Below, one piece after another: positions 8,847-25,084 of a stretch of DNA of 32,000 nt. The first letter of the stretch is position 1. Every line of letters starts with the position of its first letter. A program made the position numbers and the translations under genes. This stretch comes from Wallemia ichthyophaga EXF-994 (taxonomy: Eukaryota; Fungi; Basidiomycota), in assembly GCF_000400465.1 (NCBI RefSeq), contig NW_008806283.1, positions 300,001 to 332,000 on the forward strand. The letters are read 5' to 3'. The notes under the pieces are model-generated. The model saw only the letters and a list, made by a program, of their open reading frames with translations. It was not told where the DNA came from and did no database searches.

Positions 8847-10489
8847 CTAGACTCCATAATCAATCCAGTTTATAGCATATCCACTTGTTAAACGATGCTT
8901 ATTGGCTGTGATTTGTACATCACCATCCTCATTCTCATTGTCGTTCTCATTTCCGTTCTCACCTTCTTCACCGCTCTGCGCTACTCCTTCCATTGGATGC
9001 AAGTCAATACCTTCCACGGAATCTAAATCTGAATCGACTATTTCGTCGTCATCGTACATTTCAAGATCGTAATCGTGTTCCTTCTTCACATTCCCTTCGC
9101 CGTCTTGATTCTCTTCTTGGTGTCTCACTATTGTACTCGTGTCTTCCTCTTCCTCCTCATCTTGCTCATTTTCCTCCTCGCCCTCCCTTGGCTCACCTTT
9201 CAAATCAGCCAAAACCATAGCATCATCATATCCATCCTCGCTCTCGTCCTCAAAAGCAGCGAGATCCAATCTCGGCCTTTTCACATCCGCGATCGGAGAG
9301 GTACTTTCACGCTTCGTGCGCTTCCTATCTGTATTTGTACCTTCCAGCACTTTCTTTAATAGCGCCTCCTCATACTCCCTATCATACTCCTCAAACTCAT
9401 CTTCCAAGTCTGCATCGTCATCCAACTCTAAAAGCAGATCTTCGTATACTTTGTGATATGAATGCGGTTTTTTTATCAATGGTAGATTCATTGGTAGTAG
9501 TGCGTCTGACTGAAACGTAGAGAATGGATACTGATCCAACATTTTTGCCTGTGTCTCGTGATGCTTGAAATGCATTTTCGAAAGAGGTATCCATTTCTTC
9601 AGATTCCCCGTTGGCGGTGCTTGACTTTCAACGCTGAGCCAACGATCACGCTTCTCGTAGTCAAGAGCCTCTTTTGGTCCTGTACCACGGACCACGGCCA
9701 ATGCGATATCAACGTCCCCAGTGACTACCTCCATCATTTTCTGTATAAAATAGTCAGACTAACTCCTTATCGCTGTATAAAAACGCTCACCTTCTTCGTT
9801 GCGTGTTTTGTTCCCATGAATGCAATTCTTGCCTCCACACCGGCGATAACAAACGCTAAAAGAGGTCTAAGAAACTTCTTAAGAACTTCCTCGACTTTTA
9901 ATTGAAAGTCTTTGTCGATAGACTCGCGATTGATCATCTTCTTGAGTGTTTGTCCAATCAACAAGTCTTTCGAGTTGTGTGGATCAATCACGAGGTTATC
10001 TTCAATTTCCTCCAGACTTAATCCTTTCTTCTTTAAACGGTAACGCCTGTTCTTCTGCGCTGAGCGGAATGCAACGTCTGTGGTAGACGTCGGTGCCAAG
10101 TAGTTGATACAACGAGCGCGTTCATTCGAACTCAAGATCTGCCATTGAATCAGGAATCTATGAAAGACATCCTCAACTGCTTCAAATCGTTCTGAAATTT
10201 CATAACTCATTTCCTGTTCGATTGTGTGTTCATTACTGATACTCTCATAGTCGAGGACATTTATGTATTCCATACACTGTGCCTGTGATTTTGTGCGCAC
10301 GTCAAGCGCTACCAAATCCGCTCTAAACCTCGATCTTCTCGCAACAGCCTTGAAGAATCGTTCCTTCTCAATCCCTGTCCAGAATGCGCCTGTAATCCAA
10401 GAATCTTTGTATTTATCTACCGTCTTCGTTTCTCTTAGCACTTTCCTATATCGTTCAATCTGCTCATCGGTGATATGCAACCCTGCCAT
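8847..10489 (-). CDS. RRN5: RNA polymerase I upstream activating factor subunit Rrn5-like (SANT/Myb-like N-terminus, acidic C-terminus), 2 exons (intron 9790-9741)
   Basis: The segment WTGIEKERFFKAVARRSRFRADLVALDVRTKSQAQCMEYINVL resembles the Rrn5 SANT-like region. A 50-nt GTGAGC...CTGAC...CAG intron joins the two ORFs in frame. Confidence 0.6.
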
Positions 10490-20388: not shown

Positions 20389-22326
20389 ATGGCCAGGAAG
20401 AGATCTCACGCGTCAAAGAAATCAAATAGTGTTAAAGATCCAAAGCCAGATTCAATTCCAATGGATTCAGAGGATGAATTCCATCATCAAAATGACAGAA
20501 TCGACTTTGGTCATAATTCTCCTTCTGATGATGATTCTGATAACGAGGAGGAAGTTTATGGTTTAAAGGGCGTTGACGATGAGGATGAAGATGACAATGA
20601 TGATGATGACGACGACGACGATGTTGATATGGGCGATTACCAAGATGTTCCAGACGATAACATCAACTTGGATCACACCAACGACAACTCCGATCACTCT
20701 GACAACTCCGAAGAAAACTCGGATGACGCTTCCAAACTCAAATCTTGGGGTTCTCGTCAATCTGCTTATTACTCACGTCAGGATGAAAATGAGAGCGATG
20801 ACGACGAAGATACTGAGCAAAATCGCAAACTCGAACAAGAAGAGGCTTTGAAATTACAAAAGTCTTCAAGGCAGGATTGGTCTTGGGATGACGTTAAAGA
20901 TATCGGTGGTGTGGTTGAAGATGAAGGCAATCAAGATACAGCAGTTGATTTAGATGAACCAGAAGACAATACAGCCTATATTGACACAAGCGATCTATCT
21001 CACTCTGATAAATTAGCTCTACTACAAAAAACTTCTCCTGAAACACTTGCCTTATTGACAGATTACGAGGATATTCTTAGCAAATTAAGAGAAACTGAAG
21101 AGTTCATCGCAAAGCGCAAAAAGGAAGATATAAACCATCCTGCTTTAGGATTGCTCTACGTCTACCACCAAACTCTCCTCACTTATGCTCCTCTACTAAC
21201 CTACTTCCTCTGTCTAAGAGCTTCACCAGCGTATGCACACGATAGAATAAAGTTGCTTCAACATCCCGTTCTCAATCGTATGGTCACTCTCCGTGAAGGT
21301 CTCTCACGTATGGAGGATCTAGGTTTCGGTCCCGGCGATGAACAAGCTATACCGGAAGATGACGAAGAGGATCAGCAAGATATTCGCAATATGGTTCGCG
21401 AATGGGCAGCTCACAAGCAAGATGATGTTGACGATGATGTCGATAACTCACTTGAGCAGGGTGAGCTTGAAGGTCTGATGGTGGATGAAAGTGAAAATGT
21501 TGCACCACCTAAGAAAGATAAGAAGGATAAGAAGAAGAGTAAGAAGAATTCTTCAAACAACTCCAATCTTATACATCAAGTCGATGAATCGGCATTCGAG
21601 TACAAACCATCAACCTCGAAATCTAATAAAAAGGATTTGCAGAGAAATACAGACGATGATTACCTTGGAGAAGCTGACACATTATCAACACTCGATGCGG
21701 AATCCAAGAAGAAGAATAAGAAATCGTTGCAATTCCATACAGCAAGAATAGCTAAGACGGACAACCGTCGTAGTGCAGCATCGAAGCAGCGTCAGAGTGG
21801 TGATGACGATGTACCATACCGTGAACGTAAGAAGGCTCGTCTAGAAAAGGGTGGAAAGAGTGCCGAGGGAGATGAGCTAGATGGAGGAGAATGGACAGCA
21901 CAGGATGAAGCCACACGTCGTCAGATAATGAATGAAGATGAGGGATTAGGTGATGGTGGAGACGGTGGTGATGGCGATGACTATTACAACCTCGTCCGAC
22001 AAAGCAAGAAGGCTAAAAAGGAAGCAAAGAAAGAGGAATATGATGATGCAAGATGGAAGAATAGGGTTGACTACGTTGATGAGAGTGGAGTTGATGGACC
22101 ACGTTCACTTCCACGTGATATTGCATTGAATAAGGCGGTTACACGCGCGCGTTCATTTAAGCACTCCAAGTTAAACCGTAATCCACGTCTGAAGAAGAGG
22201 ATTAGATTCGATCAAGCACAGAAGAAGATCAAGTCGATGAAGCCTGTTTATCAGGGTGGACAAGAAGGACAGTATGAAGGAGAGAGAAGCGGAATAACGC
22301 GGAATGTGAAATCGACTAAGTTATAG
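20389..22326 (+). CDS. SAS10: U3 snoRNP / SSU processome protein Sas10/Utp3
   Basis: Acidic N-terminus, WGSRQSAYY and EQEEALKLQK, and the C-terminal Sas10 domain RNPRLKKRIRFDQAQKKIKS...YEGERSGITRNVKSTKL. Confidence 0.9.
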   Translation: MARKRSHASKKSNSVKDPKPDSIPMDSEDEFHHQNDRIDFGHNSPSDDDSDNEEEVYGLKGVDDEDEDDNDDDDDDDDVDMGDYQDVPDDNINLDHTNDNSDHSDNSEENSDDASKLKSWGSRQSAYYSRQDENESDDDEDTEQNRKLEQEEALKLQKSSRQDWSWDDVKDIGGVVEDEGNQDTAVDLDEPEDNTAYIDTSDLSHSDKLALLQKTSPETLALLTDYEDILSKLRETEEFIAKRKKEDINHPALGLLYVYHQTLLTYAPLLTYFLCLRASPAYAHDRIKLLQHPVLNRMVTLREGLSRMEDLGFGPGDEQAIPEDDEEDQQDIRNMVREWAAHKQDDVDDDVDNSLEQGELEGLMVDESENVAPPKKDKKDKKKSKKNSSNNSNLIHQVDESAFEYKPSTSKSNKKDLQRNTDDDYLGEADTLSTLDAESKKKNKKSLQFHTARIAKTDNRRSAASKQRQSGDDDVPYRERKKARLEKGGKSAEGDELDGGEWTAQDEATRRQIMNEDEGLGDGGDGGDGDDYYNLVRQSKKAKKEAKKEEYDDARWKNRVDYVDESGVDGPRSLPRDIALNKAVTRARSFKHSKLNRNPRLKKRIRFDQAQKKIKSMKPVYQGGQEGQYEGERSGITRNVKSTKL

Positions 22327-22759: not shown

Positions 22760-23318
22760 TTTATATTTTTAGTTTTTTATCGTTGAGTTGAGAGAGTGGC
22801 TCAGTTGGGCTGGGTACTTTGTTCTTCTCTACAATCAAGTAGTTTTATTGAAAATTATTATTTGTAAGTAATTCAAAGTAAGGGAGATTGAATAGATTAT
22901 CTAGTCAAATGATGTACATCTATCGTTTACATATAGGAAGAGTCGTCAGAATGCTTTCTTGAAGATATTTTATCGATTGCTGATCATATTCTTGATATTC
23001 TCATCTACTTCTAATTTCCCTGCAATTCCTTTATAATTCTCTAACAAATTTTCGCTAGGTCTATTTTGAATATTTTCTTGTATTATCTTTATAATCAATG
23101 TTATTGTGATATTTAAAAATTTATATTTATAAGTACTTAAAAAGTGAACACAATTCGCGTACGAGGGGAAAGACAATCAAGACAATCAGCACAACATAGA
23201 TAAAAGCAAATAAAAGATGAAATAAAATGTATATAATCAAATAAATATATTGATATATCCTATTGCATTTGTTAGTAATTATCAACTAACCCCTTACTAC
23301 CAATACACATCCACACAA

Positions 23319-23556
23319 AAGTTCAGACATCCAAGGAAGTATTTTGGCCCTCAATGAACCTGAGTGGGAGTTCACTTGACTACGATTTTACACTGCAAGC
23401 AGCGCCTACATCTCTGCCAAAGCCTTTTGGGTTCAACTTTGGCTTATGAGTTGAAGGAGTAGCAATCAAGGAACTCGACCACCTTAACCGAGGTGCGACC
23501 CCCGGCGATTCTAGAGTGGAAACTGCGACGTGGAAACGAAATGTTTCATCAGGTTG
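23319..23556 (-). ncRNA. snR128: U14 box C/D snoRNA
   Basis: Box C TGATGA at 23551-23546. Domain A TCGCAGTTTCCAC (23528-23516) is complementary to the conserved 18S GTGAAACTGCGA. Domain B CTTCCTTGGATGT directly precedes box D CTGA (23326-23323) and is a perfect complement to the conserved 18S ACATCCAAGGAAG; the D+5 rule gives the C equivalent to yeast Cm414. Terminal stem CACACAA/TTGTGTG. Confidence 0.92.
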
Positions 23557-23661
23557 TGTGGGTGTAGATGGTTGAGTAAGGAATGCTTTCAACTCACCTA
23601 AAATTTTCGTTAGCGCTGAGGAATTCCATCGCCCACAACACACAACACTATCACCCAAACT

Positions 23662-23812
23662 AAGTATCAGTAATGACCAGGCTGGCAAGCCTTTAAAGTG
23701 CATCTGCGAGCAAGCTCACACCGCTGTCCAACAATCCAGCGACGGATGTTGGCTTAATTGCTTCAGCATAGTCGCGTAAGACGGGGATAAGAAGTAAAGG
23801 TCATCATTTGGT
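23662..23812 (-). ncRNA. snR190: snR190-like box C/D snoRNA
   Basis: Box C ATGATGA at 23807-23801 and box D CTGA at 23670-23667. CTTCTTATCCCCG after box C is complementary, with one bulge, to the conserved 25S CGGGGAAAGAAG. CTTGCCAG near the 3' end can pair with 25S domain I TTGGCGAG. It lies directly upstream of U14, the arrangement known from the yeast snR190-U14 cluster. Confidence 0.68.
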
Positions 23813-23906
23813 AGTGTGGGTGTGTATTTGTTATGTGTGTGGTGCGCTATTCCACTCACTCTACTTGATCGTTGGGTTGCAAGAAGCAAATTTGGAAGAA
23901 GAGCAA

Positions 23907-23913
23907 TTTTATA
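23907..23913 (-). promoter_or_regulatory. Putative TATA box of the snoRNA host transcript
   Basis: TATAAAA on the minus strand, 47 nt upstream of the first donor, which leaves room for a first exon of about 20 nt. Confidence 0.5.
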
Positions 23914-24172
23914 GCCTAGTGAAAATCTTCTATAAGCACATTTGTGGGTGTTTTAAGTGTATTTAAGATTACAAAGGCATAGGAATTCATATAAAGCAAT
24001 TTTAACATTCAATTTGCGTGTTTTTAGTTGATATTTGGTGTGATATTGATAAGGATAGAACAAGAGGGAAGATGAATCAAGTTGATGATTGTATGCGTTG
24101 GACAGTTTATTTGATACATTTACAAGCTTATTACTACCTTTCTACCAAAACATCCATCACGCTGTCGATCGA

Positions 24173-25084
24173 ATGCCTCCAACACGACGGACTAATGCTA
24201 TACCCAGTACGAGCAGCAGTACGAGCAGCAGCAGTACAAGCAACCGACAGCGACCTTCTACACGTATAACGCTTGATAGTGACGATGATATGGACTATAG
24301 TAATAGCAATAACCGCAATAGCCACAGCAACCACAGCGACCGCAATAACAACGACGACGAAGTTCAATTCAGATCAGCAAGGCGTCTACGTGGTATCGAT
24401 AATGGTATCCTTGTCAATCAAACGCAGCCACCCCAGCAACCAGCAAACGTATCGCACTCACTGCCTGCACGGCCTATAAGGCCACGCACTGCAAGTTACC
24501 CTAACAATCCATTCATCCGTCACCCACGCCATCATCCACATTCAACGCATTTCCTCGCAATGACAGAAATGGGTGCGTTGCGTATATTGCACGATAGCAT
24601 GCCAAACAATCGTCCTATGATGGGTAGAGGTTGGGATGGACTAGGATTAGATGGTGTAGACGCCCGCATTCGACAACGCTATCATCAATTAGATATACCC
24701 CTCCATCAGATCGGTTTCGGTGGTGTGTATCACCCGCATATGGTCCAGCCTGTGAAACATAGTTATAGTACTAAGCTCAGCCATCCCAGGAAATGGCCGG
24801 GGTTTTCTCAAAACGGTGGTCCTAATGTTCGGTCGAGATTAATCCTCGACGCGGCTTCTGATAGACAACTGACTATACACGGAGAAGGCGATAACGCACT
24901 TTATGCTCTTAGATGTGGGCATGTTATAGATGGTAATACACATCACAATCTCATCGAGAATAACGTCATTCCTAAGAAACGGAAGACTAGTAAGAGGAAA
25001 TATTGCTTTGTTTGCCCCGTGGCAAGCTGTAATGCAGAACACACGCAAGAACCTGGATTAGATGCTATACGGTTGTGGACTTAG
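24173..25084 (+). CDS. Low-complexity protein with a SIM-like motif and a C-terminal degenerate RING; possibly a SUMO-targeted ubiquitin ligase subunit (Rfp/Slx5-like)
   Basis: The likely start is MPPTRR at 24173 within ORF 24089..25084. It has a SIM-like RITLDSDDD and a C-terminal ALRCGHVIDG...CPVASC. The family assignment is inference. Confidence 0.5.
   Translation: MPPTRRTNAIPSTSSSTSSSSTSNRQRPSTRITLDSDDDMDYSNSNNRNSHSNHSDRNNNDDEVQFRSARRLRGIDNGILVNQTQPPQQPANVSHSLPARPIRPRTASYPNNPFIRHPRHHPHSTHFLAMTEMGALRILHDSMPNNRPMMGRGWDGLGLDGVDARIRQRYHQLDIPLHQIGFGGVYHPHMVQPVKHSYSTKLSHPRKWPGFSQNGGPNVRSRLILDAASDRQLTIHGEGDNALYALRCGHVIDGNTHHNLIENNVIPKKRKTSKRKYCFVCPVASCNAEHTQEPGLDAIRLWT
24205..24243 (+). repeat. 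Short 12-bp coding tandem repeat (CAGTACGAGCAG, about 3 copies) encoding a Ser/Thr run
   Basis: Two exact copies, a CAG insert, then one degenerate copy. Confidence 0.8.

Follow-up and report, generated by a model that had tools for sequence, protein, structure and literature searches.

The window analysed here, a 32-kb stretch of the genome of the salt-loving basidiomycete Wallemia ichthyophaga, carries a host gene for two small nucleolar RNAs (snoRNAs) of ribosome assembly on its minus strand. A TATA box is followed by a short non-coding exon 1, a first intron containing an snR190-like RNA, a second intron containing U14, and an exon 2 (Table 1). An earlier note on this DNA had proposed a snoRNA host gene with two back-to-back introns, one for each RNA, and a zero-length exon where they meet. 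This anatomy was right, in a host that is non-coding and follows the rule of one snoRNA per intron: sequence inspection located every listed element at its minus-strand position, and the intron lengths of 262 and 338 nt were borne out. The same note had put the other introns of the window at 44-57 nt. In a loose check of this range, candidates of 44, 53, 55, and 44 nt were found at breaks in open reading frames; a generic short-intron regular expression performed no better than shuffles (20 matches in the window vs 29 +/- 7 in shuffled sequence). The expression was therefore unusable for defining the splice consensus of this genome, and only the few candidates at reading-frame breaks (44-55 nt) are credible.

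Table 1. Features of the host gene, listed in the direction of transcription proposed here (positions in the window; splice boundaries are marked by a slash).
Feature	Position	Strand	Details
Upstream element TTATAGAAGATTTT	23922..23935	-	TTATA.AAG.TTTT in the alignment of 3/3 species; ~10 nt upstream of TATA box
TATA box TATAAAA	23907..23913	-	From sequence; TATAAA(A) aligned in W. hederae and W. mellicola
12-mer AAATTTGCTTCT	23882..23893	-	12/12 identical in three species; ~20 nt downstream of TATA box
Exon 1, non-coding, no ATG	23860..23893	-	3' end ...GTAGA (...CAAGTAGA) at 23860; 5' boundary approximate
Intron 1, 262 nt	23598..23859	-	Donor GTGAGT 23859-23854; GCTAAC 23614-23609 (branch A 23610); TTTTAG ending 23598
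snR190-like external helix (predicted), 5' arm	23811..23853	-	Pairs with 3' arm
snR190-like box C/D snoRNA	23667..23807	-	141 nt box C to box D; box C AUGAUGA 23807-23801, box D CUGA 23670-23667
snR190-like external helix (predicted), 3' arm	23619..23663	-	Pairs with 5' arm
Junction GCTAAC-GAAAATTT-TAG/GTGAGT	23592..23614	-	AG 23599-23598 abuts GT 23597-23596, zero nt between
Intron 2, 338 nt	23260..23597	-	Donor GTGAGT 23597-23592; TACTAAC 23277-23271 (branch A 23272); TAG 23262-23260
U14 external helix (predicted), 5' arm	23553..23588	-	Pairs with 3' arm
U14, long form	23323..23551	-	229 nt box C to box D; box C UGAUGA 23551-23546, box D CUGA 23326-23323
U14 external helix (predicted), 3' arm	23283..23319	-	Pairs with 5' arm
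Exon 2, AT-rich	23150..23259	-	Poorly conserved; by eye without obvious long reading frame; 3' boundary approximate

Synteny around the locus extends to W. hederae and W. mellicola, with the gene order ATR, pyruvate kinase, Sas10, host gene, COX16, and mitochondrial carrier. A fourth Wallemia-like Sas10 contig (L122, ENA) stops 667 nt past the stop codon, short of the host gene. The Sas10 neighbourhoods of Botryobasidium, Cutaneotrichosporon, and Rhodotorula showed no synteny and no U14 motif. In the three-species alignment, the 12-mer probably marks the transcription start region and the start of exon 1, the remainder of which is not conserved; the last base of this exon before GTGAGT is A in 3/3 species. 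The element upstream of the TATA box may resemble the RRPE-type promoter element of ribosome-biogenesis genes. The transcript has the character of a non-coding host, with no ATG in exon 1 and poorly conserved exons: outside the 12-mer, exons 1 and 2 show 26-41% three-way identity (26% for the first 100 nt of exon 2) vs 78-80% for the snoRNAs. A weak SNORD60 match at 23197-23116 (16.6 bits, E 6.7) falls in the poorly conserved exon 2 and was treated as chance. Each snoRNA has a canonical donor, branch motif, and acceptor for its own intron, with equivalents in both relatives. TACTAAC followed by YAG was found in W. hederae and in W. mellicola, where intron 1 measures 262 and 231 nt, respectively.

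The two snoRNAs

The RNA in intron 2 is a long form of U14, with domain A (UCGCAGUUUCCAC) and domain B (CUUCCUUGGAUGU) separated by ~150 nt in the alignment. Domain A, the essential 18S-complementary element of U14, aligns to the Rfam consensus CAUUCGCAGUUuCCaCC and is invariant in 8/8 sequences. Domain B (CCUUCCUUGGAUGUCUGA), the methylation guide, is present directly upstream of box D, and ACUUCCUUGGAUGUCUGA fits the Rfam SNORD14 consensus over its last 25 positions at a high posterior probability. Boxes C and D are invariant across the three Wallemia species and five metagenome fungi, and three-way identity of the RNA within Wallemia is 78%. The internal insertion is likewise conserved among the three Wallemia species, whose U14 aligns with metagenome fungal U14s of 209-224 nt and has GAACCCA inside the insertion in common with them.

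Searching the whole window against Rfam gave 0 matches at the gathering score and 0 at E<=0.5, and no other snoRNA was picked up. When the search was restricted to a 1.2-kb region, SNORD14 (RF00016) appeared as two sub-threshold halves of 15.7 and 22.4 bits (gathering score 64), one covering box C and domain A (UCGCAGUUUCCAC) and the other domain B and box D (CUUCCUUGGAUGUCUGA). The conserved insertion separates these halves, which points to a single long U14; its position between domains A and B is why the match is split in two and why Rfam misses the RNA. We read the sub-gathering score as a limit of the model and not as evidence against U14 identity.

The RNA in intron 1 is a box C/D snoRNA whose mature ends probably lie a few nucleotides beyond box C and box D. 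It contains an antisense element, CUUCUUAUCCCCGUCUUACGCGACU, a second element, GCUUGCCAG, upstream of box D, and CUUCUUAUCCCCGUCUUACGCGACUAUG followed by a D'-like CUGA. The boxes and antisense element are kept in 8/8 sequences, and three-way identity is 80%. CUUCUU.UCCCCG may complement the universal 25S segment CGGGGAAAGAAG near G2395. The only Rfam match to this RNA in the 1.2-kb region was Dictyostelium DdR2, a weak one (24.4 bits vs a gathering score of 80), and no Rfam family named snR190 matched it. In a metagenome scan with the box A motif, 5 of about 120 contigs had both an snR190-like RNA and U14, the rest being mostly unrelated and probably prokaryotic. Both antisense elements recur in these five fungus-like contigs, with U14 following in each. 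In the three Wallemia species, U14 follows the snR190-like RNA on the same strand after 95-126 nt, and in the five metagenome fungi after 145-587 nt; the order of the pair in Wallemia is that of yeast and Neurospora crassa. The segment GCUUGCCAG...CUGA is also common to the Wallemia RNA and N. crassa CD16, the published snR190 homologue. Box A of snR190 is complementary to helix H73 in domain V of 25S rRNA, and box B to domain I (Jaafar et al. 2021, PMC8536666); a text search of the supplements of that paper gave no match for the yeast box A and box B sequences. The label snR190-like, as used here, rests on position, the two shared antisense elements, and the weak DdR2 match.

Splice junction and predicted external helices

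Acceptor and donor abut where the two introns meet. The string TAG/GTGAGT at 23600-23592 is identical in the three species, and in each of them no other AG lies between the branch motif and its AG. W. hederae and W. mellicola have the junction at the orthologous place in the form YTRAC-N9/10-TAG/GTGAGTT, as ACTGAC-AAATTTTC-TAG/GTGAGTT (L001 9483-9462(-)) and ACTAAC-AAATTTTC-TAG/GTGAGTT (L002 9300-9279(-)). Three-way identity across the junction is 18/24 (11/17 from branch to AG and 7/7 for GTGAGTT) vs 12-23% in the spacers around it, although in three species of one genus this 24-nt conservation could partly reflect a shared constraint other than splicing. This contrast argues that both the 3' and the 5' signals are under selection. 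The earlier note had named conservation of the AG/GT site in related genomes as a test of its proposal, and the site was indeed kept in both relatives while the flanking spacers diverged. The composite motif CTRAY-N4-20-AG/GTRAGT occurs a single time in the 32 kb, both strands considered, and that occurrence is the junction; 300 dinucleotide-preserving shuffles gave an expectation of 0.12 per window. The junction also contains the recursive-splice-site motif (polypyrimidine-AG/GTRAGT) in the form AAATTTTCTAG/GTGAGTT.

Duplex folding predicts an external helix around each snoRNA, of 32 bp and -41.7 kcal/mol for the snR190-like RNA and of 30 bp and -32.5 kcal/mol for U14 (z = -4.3 vs shuffles for the inner 30 nt). 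Across the three species, the predicted helices span 19-32 bp and their arm sequences differ; that they form in every species despite differing sequence suggests that each intron is a self-contained processing unit. The distance from box D to the 3' splice site is 56-73 nt for the snR190-like RNA and 53-63 nt for U14 in the three species, and the former spacing requires the internal AG to be a real acceptor. Intronic snoRNAs are recognised to lie at a constrained distance from the 3' splice site (N. crassa discussion, PMC2780460).

Proposed processing and its alternatives

We consider two sequential splicing events across a zero-length exon to be the best explanation of this locus, and a likely one. 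From its anatomy, conservation, and predicted helices, we infer transcription, both splicing events, their order, and exonucleolytic trimming as follows. The host, which does not encode a protein, would presumably be transcribed by RNA polymerase II from the minus-strand TATA promoter. An internal exon present in other fungi would have been lost, such that acceptor TAG (23598) now abuts donor GTGAGT (23597). By analogy with ascomycete clusters, splicing would most likely proceed 5' to 3'. The first step would join exon 1 to GTGAGTT and rebuild a donor, A/GTGAGTT, near-identical to the first donor, and the second would splice exon 1 to exon 2 from this rebuilt donor, with TACTAAC and TAG as its other signals. 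Each lariat would then be debranched and trimmed by exonucleases back to the snoRNP, separating the snR190-like RNA from U14 without a cut by RNase III (Rnt1). The flanking helix in each intron would bring boxes C and D together and leave 27-39 single-stranded nucleotides from donor to acceptor, so a spliceosome adapted to ~50-nt introns could plausibly handle introns of 262 and 338 nt.

The loss of the internal exon appears to be the derived state. In the five fungus-like metagenome contigs, the order is snR190-like RNA, branch motif and AG, an exon of 45-57 nt (longer in L061), GTGAGT, and U14. Retention of this exon, together with the intronic location of the N. crassa pair in one non-coding host, argues that the arrangement in Wallemia arose by exon loss.

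A further set of proposals is more tentative, and we would put its chances at somewhat below even. The U14 donor may have to wait for removal of the snR190 intron, and for the joining of exon 1 to it, before it can be used; one promoter and one splicing relay would then couple the output of both snoRNAs. The long covarying helices, which take up nearly all of each intron, may be what lets a spliceosome tuned to ~50 nt deal with 262 and 338 nt (27-39 nt single-stranded). For Basidiomycota, the locus may provide the first snR190-U14 pair on record and the first snoRNA host gene with a zero-length exon.

Luo et al. (2013, PMC3596301) stated an alternative for abutting snoRNA introns that their EST and RT-PCR products could not exclude. 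Applied here, one donor (23859) would be spliced to either of two acceptors, 23598 or 23260, and the internal GTGAGT would never be used; the lariat would contain the snR190-like RNA alone or both RNAs, and U14 would come from an exon or from endonucleolytic cleavage. We regard this as improbable, given that the internal GTGAGTT is 7/7 invariant beside spacers of 12-23% identity and that U14 has its own external helix, with its own branch motif and an acceptor 53-63 nt downstream. U14 is essential, which makes its dependence on a by-product pathway unlikely.

A little less probable again is the removal of a single 600-nt intron (23859-23260) in one step, after the model of the S. cerevisiae dicistron or plant intronic clusters. 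An RNase III/Rnt1-type endonuclease would then separate the snoRNAs, as Rnt1 does for S. cerevisiae snR190-U14 according to the background given in PMC5934358, and AG/GT would be a relic of the lost exon, which could last a while after exon loss. The inter-snoRNA spacer of 95-126 nt, however, has no conserved or unusually stable hairpin. No shared Rnt1-substrate-type hairpin was found in it among the three species, and its folding was no better than shuffles in 2/3 (W. hederae, -15.9 vs -15.0 kcal/mol; W. mellicola, -14.1 vs -12.2 kcal/mol). In duplex folding, the halves of the spacer pair outward with the far flanks of their own snoRNAs and not with each other. The junction has also stayed intact while its surroundings fell to 12-23% identity, which argues against a neutral relic.

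We consider it very improbable that the RNAs arise without splicing and that the splice-like motifs are coincidental. The RNAs would then come from separate promoters (Liu et al. describe putative promoters upstream of each N. crassa cluster snoRNA, PMC2780460) or be trimmed by exonucleases out of an unspliced precursor (intronic snoRNAs can be processed independently of splicing, PMC5033589). Against this, two donors and two branch/acceptor pairs are all canonical and conserved in three species, only 95-126 nt with no TATA-like element lie between the RNAs, and chance would produce the composite junction motif 0.12 times per window.

Comparison with known systems

What is new here is the cluster (snR190-U14), the phylum, and the finding of both snR190 and U14 in a basidiomycete. 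According to a 2018 survey of the fungal snoRNAome, orthologues of U14 and snR190 seem to be absent from Basidiomycota (PMC5824354). The occurrence of both an snR190-like RNA and U14 in Wallemia corrects this annotation gap, and a long-U14 model would probably recover U14 across basidiomycetes. Two sequential splicing events at this locus would extend the fungal separation of clustered snoRNAs by the spliceosome instead of RNase III, with an internal exon of zero, to another cluster and phylum, at a junction that appears to be held by selection across a genus. With two introns, two snoRNAs, and two long helices in 600 nt, the locus is a convenient natural substrate for studying how intron-definition spliceosomes treat zero-length exons and structured cargo.

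The earlier note had mentioned, correctly, that juxtaposed snoRNA introns were known in fungi, and the novelty that it implied for them does not stand. Abutting snoRNA introns have been documented in Ascomycota by Mitrovich 2010 (as cited by Luo 2013, PMC3596301), and also by Luo 2013 (PMC3596301) and Donovan 2016 (PMC5033589); zero-length-exon splicing is thus not confined to long animal introns. For Euascomycetes, D. hansenii, and Y. lipolytica, their stepwise 5'-to-3' removal has been reported on the basis of ESTs and RT-PCR products (PMC3596301), and in Candida RNA-seq revealed recursive splicing with an exon size of zero (PMC5033589). Cases given in these papers include Debaryomyces hansenii snR41-snR70 (exon size zero), Candida/Lodderomyces snR57-snR55-snR61, and Euascomycete cluster III (PMC3596301, PMC5033589). 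Like the Wallemia locus, these clusters have a non-coding host, one box C/D snoRNA per intron, and introns that adjoin with no exon in between. Once the upstream intron is gone, a donor re-forms, and each snoRNA is freed in its own lariat, as we propose for Wallemia. The ascomycete cases belong to clusters I-III, whereas Wallemia (Wallemiomycetes) is a basidiomycete and its pair is snR190-U14, cluster V; the exon losses listed by Luo et al. are only for Hemiascomycetes, Euascomycetes, and Archiascomycetes (PMC3596301). In some Candida cases, moreover, a G is shared or donated (nested introns or a 1-nt exon); the Wallemia sites, by contrast, are complete and exactly adjacent.

The same two snoRNAs form cluster V of N. 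crassa, where CD16 (the snR190 homologue) and CD37 (U14) share a non-coding host (Liu et al. 2009, PMC2780460) and were found by RT-PCR to be co-transcribed (PMC2780460). As in Wallemia, both are intronic and follow this order, and the host has little coding potential. The text of that study describes exons and introns of the ordinary kind, with no mention of a missing internal exon (PMC2780460), and U14 is 97 nt in N. crassa vs 229 nt in Wallemia. The S. cerevisiae SNR190-U14 (SNR128) dicistron likewise holds the same pair in the same order in one precursor, but it is intronless and RNase III Rnt1 separates the RNAs. Mitrovich et al., as summarised in PMC3596301 and PMC5033589, attribute the loss of the Saccharomyces introns to splice signals that degenerated.

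Stwintrons of Pezizomycotina, in which the donor, branch, or acceptor of an external intron is split by an internal one as outlined in PMC8469720, resemble the Wallemia arrangement in that two U2-type introns need consecutive removal. We rejected this reading, as neither Wallemia intron interrupts a splice signal of the other and the two lie side by side. A parallel in splice-site form is BOT1 of Cryptococcus neoformans, where a zero-nucleotide exon between introns of 210 and 165 nt has been demonstrated (Burke et al., bioRxiv 10.1101/224170); a basidiomycete spliceosome is therefore able to splice such an exon. BOT1 and the ratchet points of Drosophila and mammals share with Wallemia the polypyrimidine-AG/GTRAGT motif in which acceptor abuts donor. 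Animal ratchet points subdivide very long introns of tens of kb, whereas the Wallemia introns total 600 nt. BOT1 and the animal cases lie in protein-coding genes with no snoRNA cargo reported, whereas in Wallemia the purpose would be the separation of two snoRNAs.

The host gene and its intron junction

We located the snoRNA host gene of the halophilic basidiomycete Wallemia ichthyophaga (class Wallemiomycetes) on the minus strand, and every element that the earlier note had named was found where it had been placed, with introns of 262 and 338 nt as it had reported. The few credible ordinary introns of the window are 44-55 nt long. The locus lies in a syntenic region of both W. hederae (L001) and W. 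mellicola (L002), and the two-intron architecture is identical in all three species.

Features of the host gene, its predicted helices and its relatives
Feature	Position	Strand	Basis
TATA box TATAAAA	23913-23907	-	sequence
Exon 1 end ...GTAGA	23860	-	sequence
Donor 1 GTGAGT	23859-23854	-	sequence
snR190-like box C/D RNA	AUGAUGA 23807-23801 to CUGA 23670-23667	-	sequence
Branch motif 1 GCTAAC	23614-23609	-	sequence
Acceptor 1 TTTTAG	ends 23598	-	sequence
Donor 2 GTGAGT	starts 23597, base directly after acceptor 1	-	sequence
U14	UGAUGA 23551-23546 to CUGA 23326-23323	-	sequence
Branch motif 2 TACTAAC	23277-23271	-	sequence
Acceptor 2 TAG	23262-23260	-	sequence
Predicted helix, snR190-like RNA	23811-23853 with 23619-23663	-	
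Predicted helix, U14	23553-23588 with 23283-23319	-	
U14, W. hederae	L001 ~9186-9414	-	
U14, W. mellicola	L002 ~9016-9245	-	
Sas10/Utp3 gene, adjoining host gene	20389-22326	+	

The composite motif CTRAY-N4-20-AG/GTRAGT (the slash marks the junction) occurs once on the two strands of the 32-kb window, with 0.12 occurrences expected by chance from 300 dinucleotide-preserving shuffles. The junction reads GCTAAC-GAAAATTT-TAG/GTGAGTT in W. ichthyophaga, ACTGAC-AAATTTTC-TAG/GTGAGTT in W. hederae, and ACTAAC-AAATTTTC-TAG/GTGAGTT in W. mellicola. Because three-way identity is 11/17 from branch motif to AG and 7/7 in GTGAGTT, amid 12-23% in the four intronic spacers, and the junction AG is the first past the branch motif in each species, the acceptor and donor halves alike are under purifying selection. 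Identity across the snR190-like RNA is 80%. The earlier note had held that non-conservation of the AG/GT site would argue against its reading; the site is kept in both relatives.

Outside the introns, the 12-mer AAATTTGCTTCT (23882-23893, minus strand), ~20 nt past the TATA box, is invariant in the three species, and TTATA.AAG.TTTT (23922-23935, minus strand), ~10 nt upstream of that box, is conserved; otherwise neither exon 1 nor the upstream sequence is. A weak SNORD60-like match in exon 2 (23116-23197, minus strand; 16.6 bits, E 6.7) is probably due to chance, as both relatives conserve this stretch poorly. The Sas10/Utp3 protein matches a W. ichthyophaga protein at 100% identity and is next closest to those of W. 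hederae (70%) and W. mellicola (65%), and the genes around the host gene are all ordinary eukaryotic ones (ATR, pyruvate kinase, Sas10, mitochondrial carrier, TPR protein, and kinase). Directly upstream of the promoter, an ORF of 331 aa (24089-25084, plus strand) opens with TTG and has no Pfam hit; as listed it is probably not a real gene, since in both relatives the nearest annotated gene in this direction is the small COX16. In W. mellicola, an annotated 90-aa gene without a Pfam hit (L002 8013-8417, minus strand), just downstream of the host gene and on its strand, may be a false annotation of the 3' portion of the host's non-coding transcript.

Identity of the two snoRNAs

The Rfam check suggested in the earlier note was borne out in part: there was no match at gathering score, while SNORD14 was recovered from the local region in two halves, box C with domain A (UCGCAGUUUCCAC, 23557-23462, 15.7 bits) and domain B with box D (CUUCCUUGGAUGUCUGA, 23419-23319, 22.4 bits), both far below the cut-off of 64 bits. 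The match is split and sub-threshold because of an insertion between domains A and B, which is conserved in all three Wallemia species. We read the 229-nt unit (78% three-way identity), present at the expected place in both relatives, as one long-form U14. Wallemia U14s measure 229-230 nt and those of five fungus-like metagenome contigs (L004, L005, L029, L035, and L061) 209-224 nt, whereas N. crassa U14 has 97 nt; GAACCCA is common to the insertions of these long forms.

For the upstream RNA, the sole Rfam match was a weak one to Dictyostelium DdR2 (24 bits, where the gathering score is 80). In this RNA the antisense element CUUCUUAUCCCCGUCUUACGCGACU precedes a CUGA, and another element, GCUUGCCAG, lies ahead of box D. 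Scanning metagenomes with TCCCCGTCNNACNCGACT yielded, among other contigs, the five named above, all of which (5/5) contain an RNA with both elements followed by a long U14. N. crassa CD16, the published snR190 homologue co-transcribed with U14 (PMC2780460), also ends in GCUUGCCAG...CUGA. Given these shared elements and the CD16 ending, snR190 seems a reasonable, if not proven, label. Canzler et al. 2018 (PMC5824354), the only paper in the literature searched that names Wallemia alongside snoRNAs, describes Basidiomycota as seemingly without snR190 or U14 orthologues; with that label, the Wallemia locus indicates that both do exist there. The long-form insertion probably explains the missing U14, since it would drop the SNORD14 match below gathering score.

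Flanking helices and a proposed two-step splicing model

Box D lies 56-73 nt (snR190-like RNA) and 53-63 nt (U14) upstream of a 3' splice site in the three species; the former spacing requires that the internal AG truly serve as an acceptor. Within each intron, the two flanks of the snoRNA are predicted to pair almost end to end (19-32 bp, -24 to -42 kcal/mol; z-scores of -1.9 to -5.8 for the inner 30 nt against shuffles). Since the arm sequences vary from species to species, it is apparently pairing, not sequence, that is kept. The predicted helices begin 1-7 nt away from boxes C and D; in each intron just 27-39 nt stay unpaired from donor to acceptor, near or under the length of the genome's short ordinary introns. 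We infer that the helices would favour assembly of the snoRNP and also make the intron effectively shorter. Folding of the inter-snoRNA spacer in the Wallemia species found no shared and no unusually stable hairpin of its own, which speaks against an Rnt1-type cleavage site.

The locus is best explained as a non-coding host gene whose transcript undergoes two rounds of splicing across a zero-length exon; we consider this model probable on comparative sequence evidence, which also supports the earlier note's proposal of two splicing events. By analogy with ascomycetes, the order would likely be 5' to 3'. Joining exon 1, whose last base is A in all three species, to GTGAGTT would rebuild a donor near-identical to the first, which would then be used with TACTAAC and TAG; debranching and trimming would yield one snoRNA per lariat.

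Ancestral state and known systems

An apparent exon of ~45-57 nt separates the two introns in the metagenome contigs, with a longer stretch in L061, where RNase MRP RNA (97.5 bits) lies between the snoRNAs. This internal exon, together with N. crassa, indicates that the Wallemia zero-length exon is a derived loss. The Sas10 neighbourhoods of Botryobasidium, Cutaneotrichosporon, and Rhodotorula showed no synteny and no U14.

In L029 (-), L035 (-), L061 (+), and L004 (-), the snR190-like/U14 pair was also observed within the spacer of the rDNA, in the same orientation as the rRNA. The order there is 28S 3' end, ~60 nt, GTGAGT, snR190-like RNA, CTAAT..AG, ~50-nt exon, GTGAGT, U14, and 5S rRNA, and L004 runs on past 5S to 18S. 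U14 and MRP are described in IGS1 of Auricularia and Inocybe in the accessible part of PMC9849065, where no mention was found of splice-like signals so near the 28S end; the article does not mention an snR190-like RNA (0 occurrences of 'snR190').

In the literature searched, we found no snR190-U14 cluster with a zero-length exon, no abutting-intron snoRNA case in Basidiomycota, and no description of Wallemia snoRNA genes. The locus is of use to specialists in basidiomycete snoRNA annotation, and is neat rather than surprising. The principle of abutting snoRNA introns and zero-length exons is already established. Luo et al. 2013 (PMC3596301), extending Mitrovich et al., count no fewer than 61 losses of exons among Hemiascomycetes, Euascomycetes, and Archiascomycetes, with EST and RT-PCR products that fit stepwise 5'-to-3' removal, though they note that alternative-acceptor use may also account for these. 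Donovan et al. 2016 (PMC5033589) describe abutting snoRNA introns in Candida, and Burke et al. (bioRxiv 10.1101/224170) demonstrated an exon of zero nucleotides in C. neoformans, itself a basidiomycete. For N. crassa, Liu et al. 2009 (PMC2780460) show that both snR190 (CD16) and U14 (CD37) lie in introns and are transcribed together.
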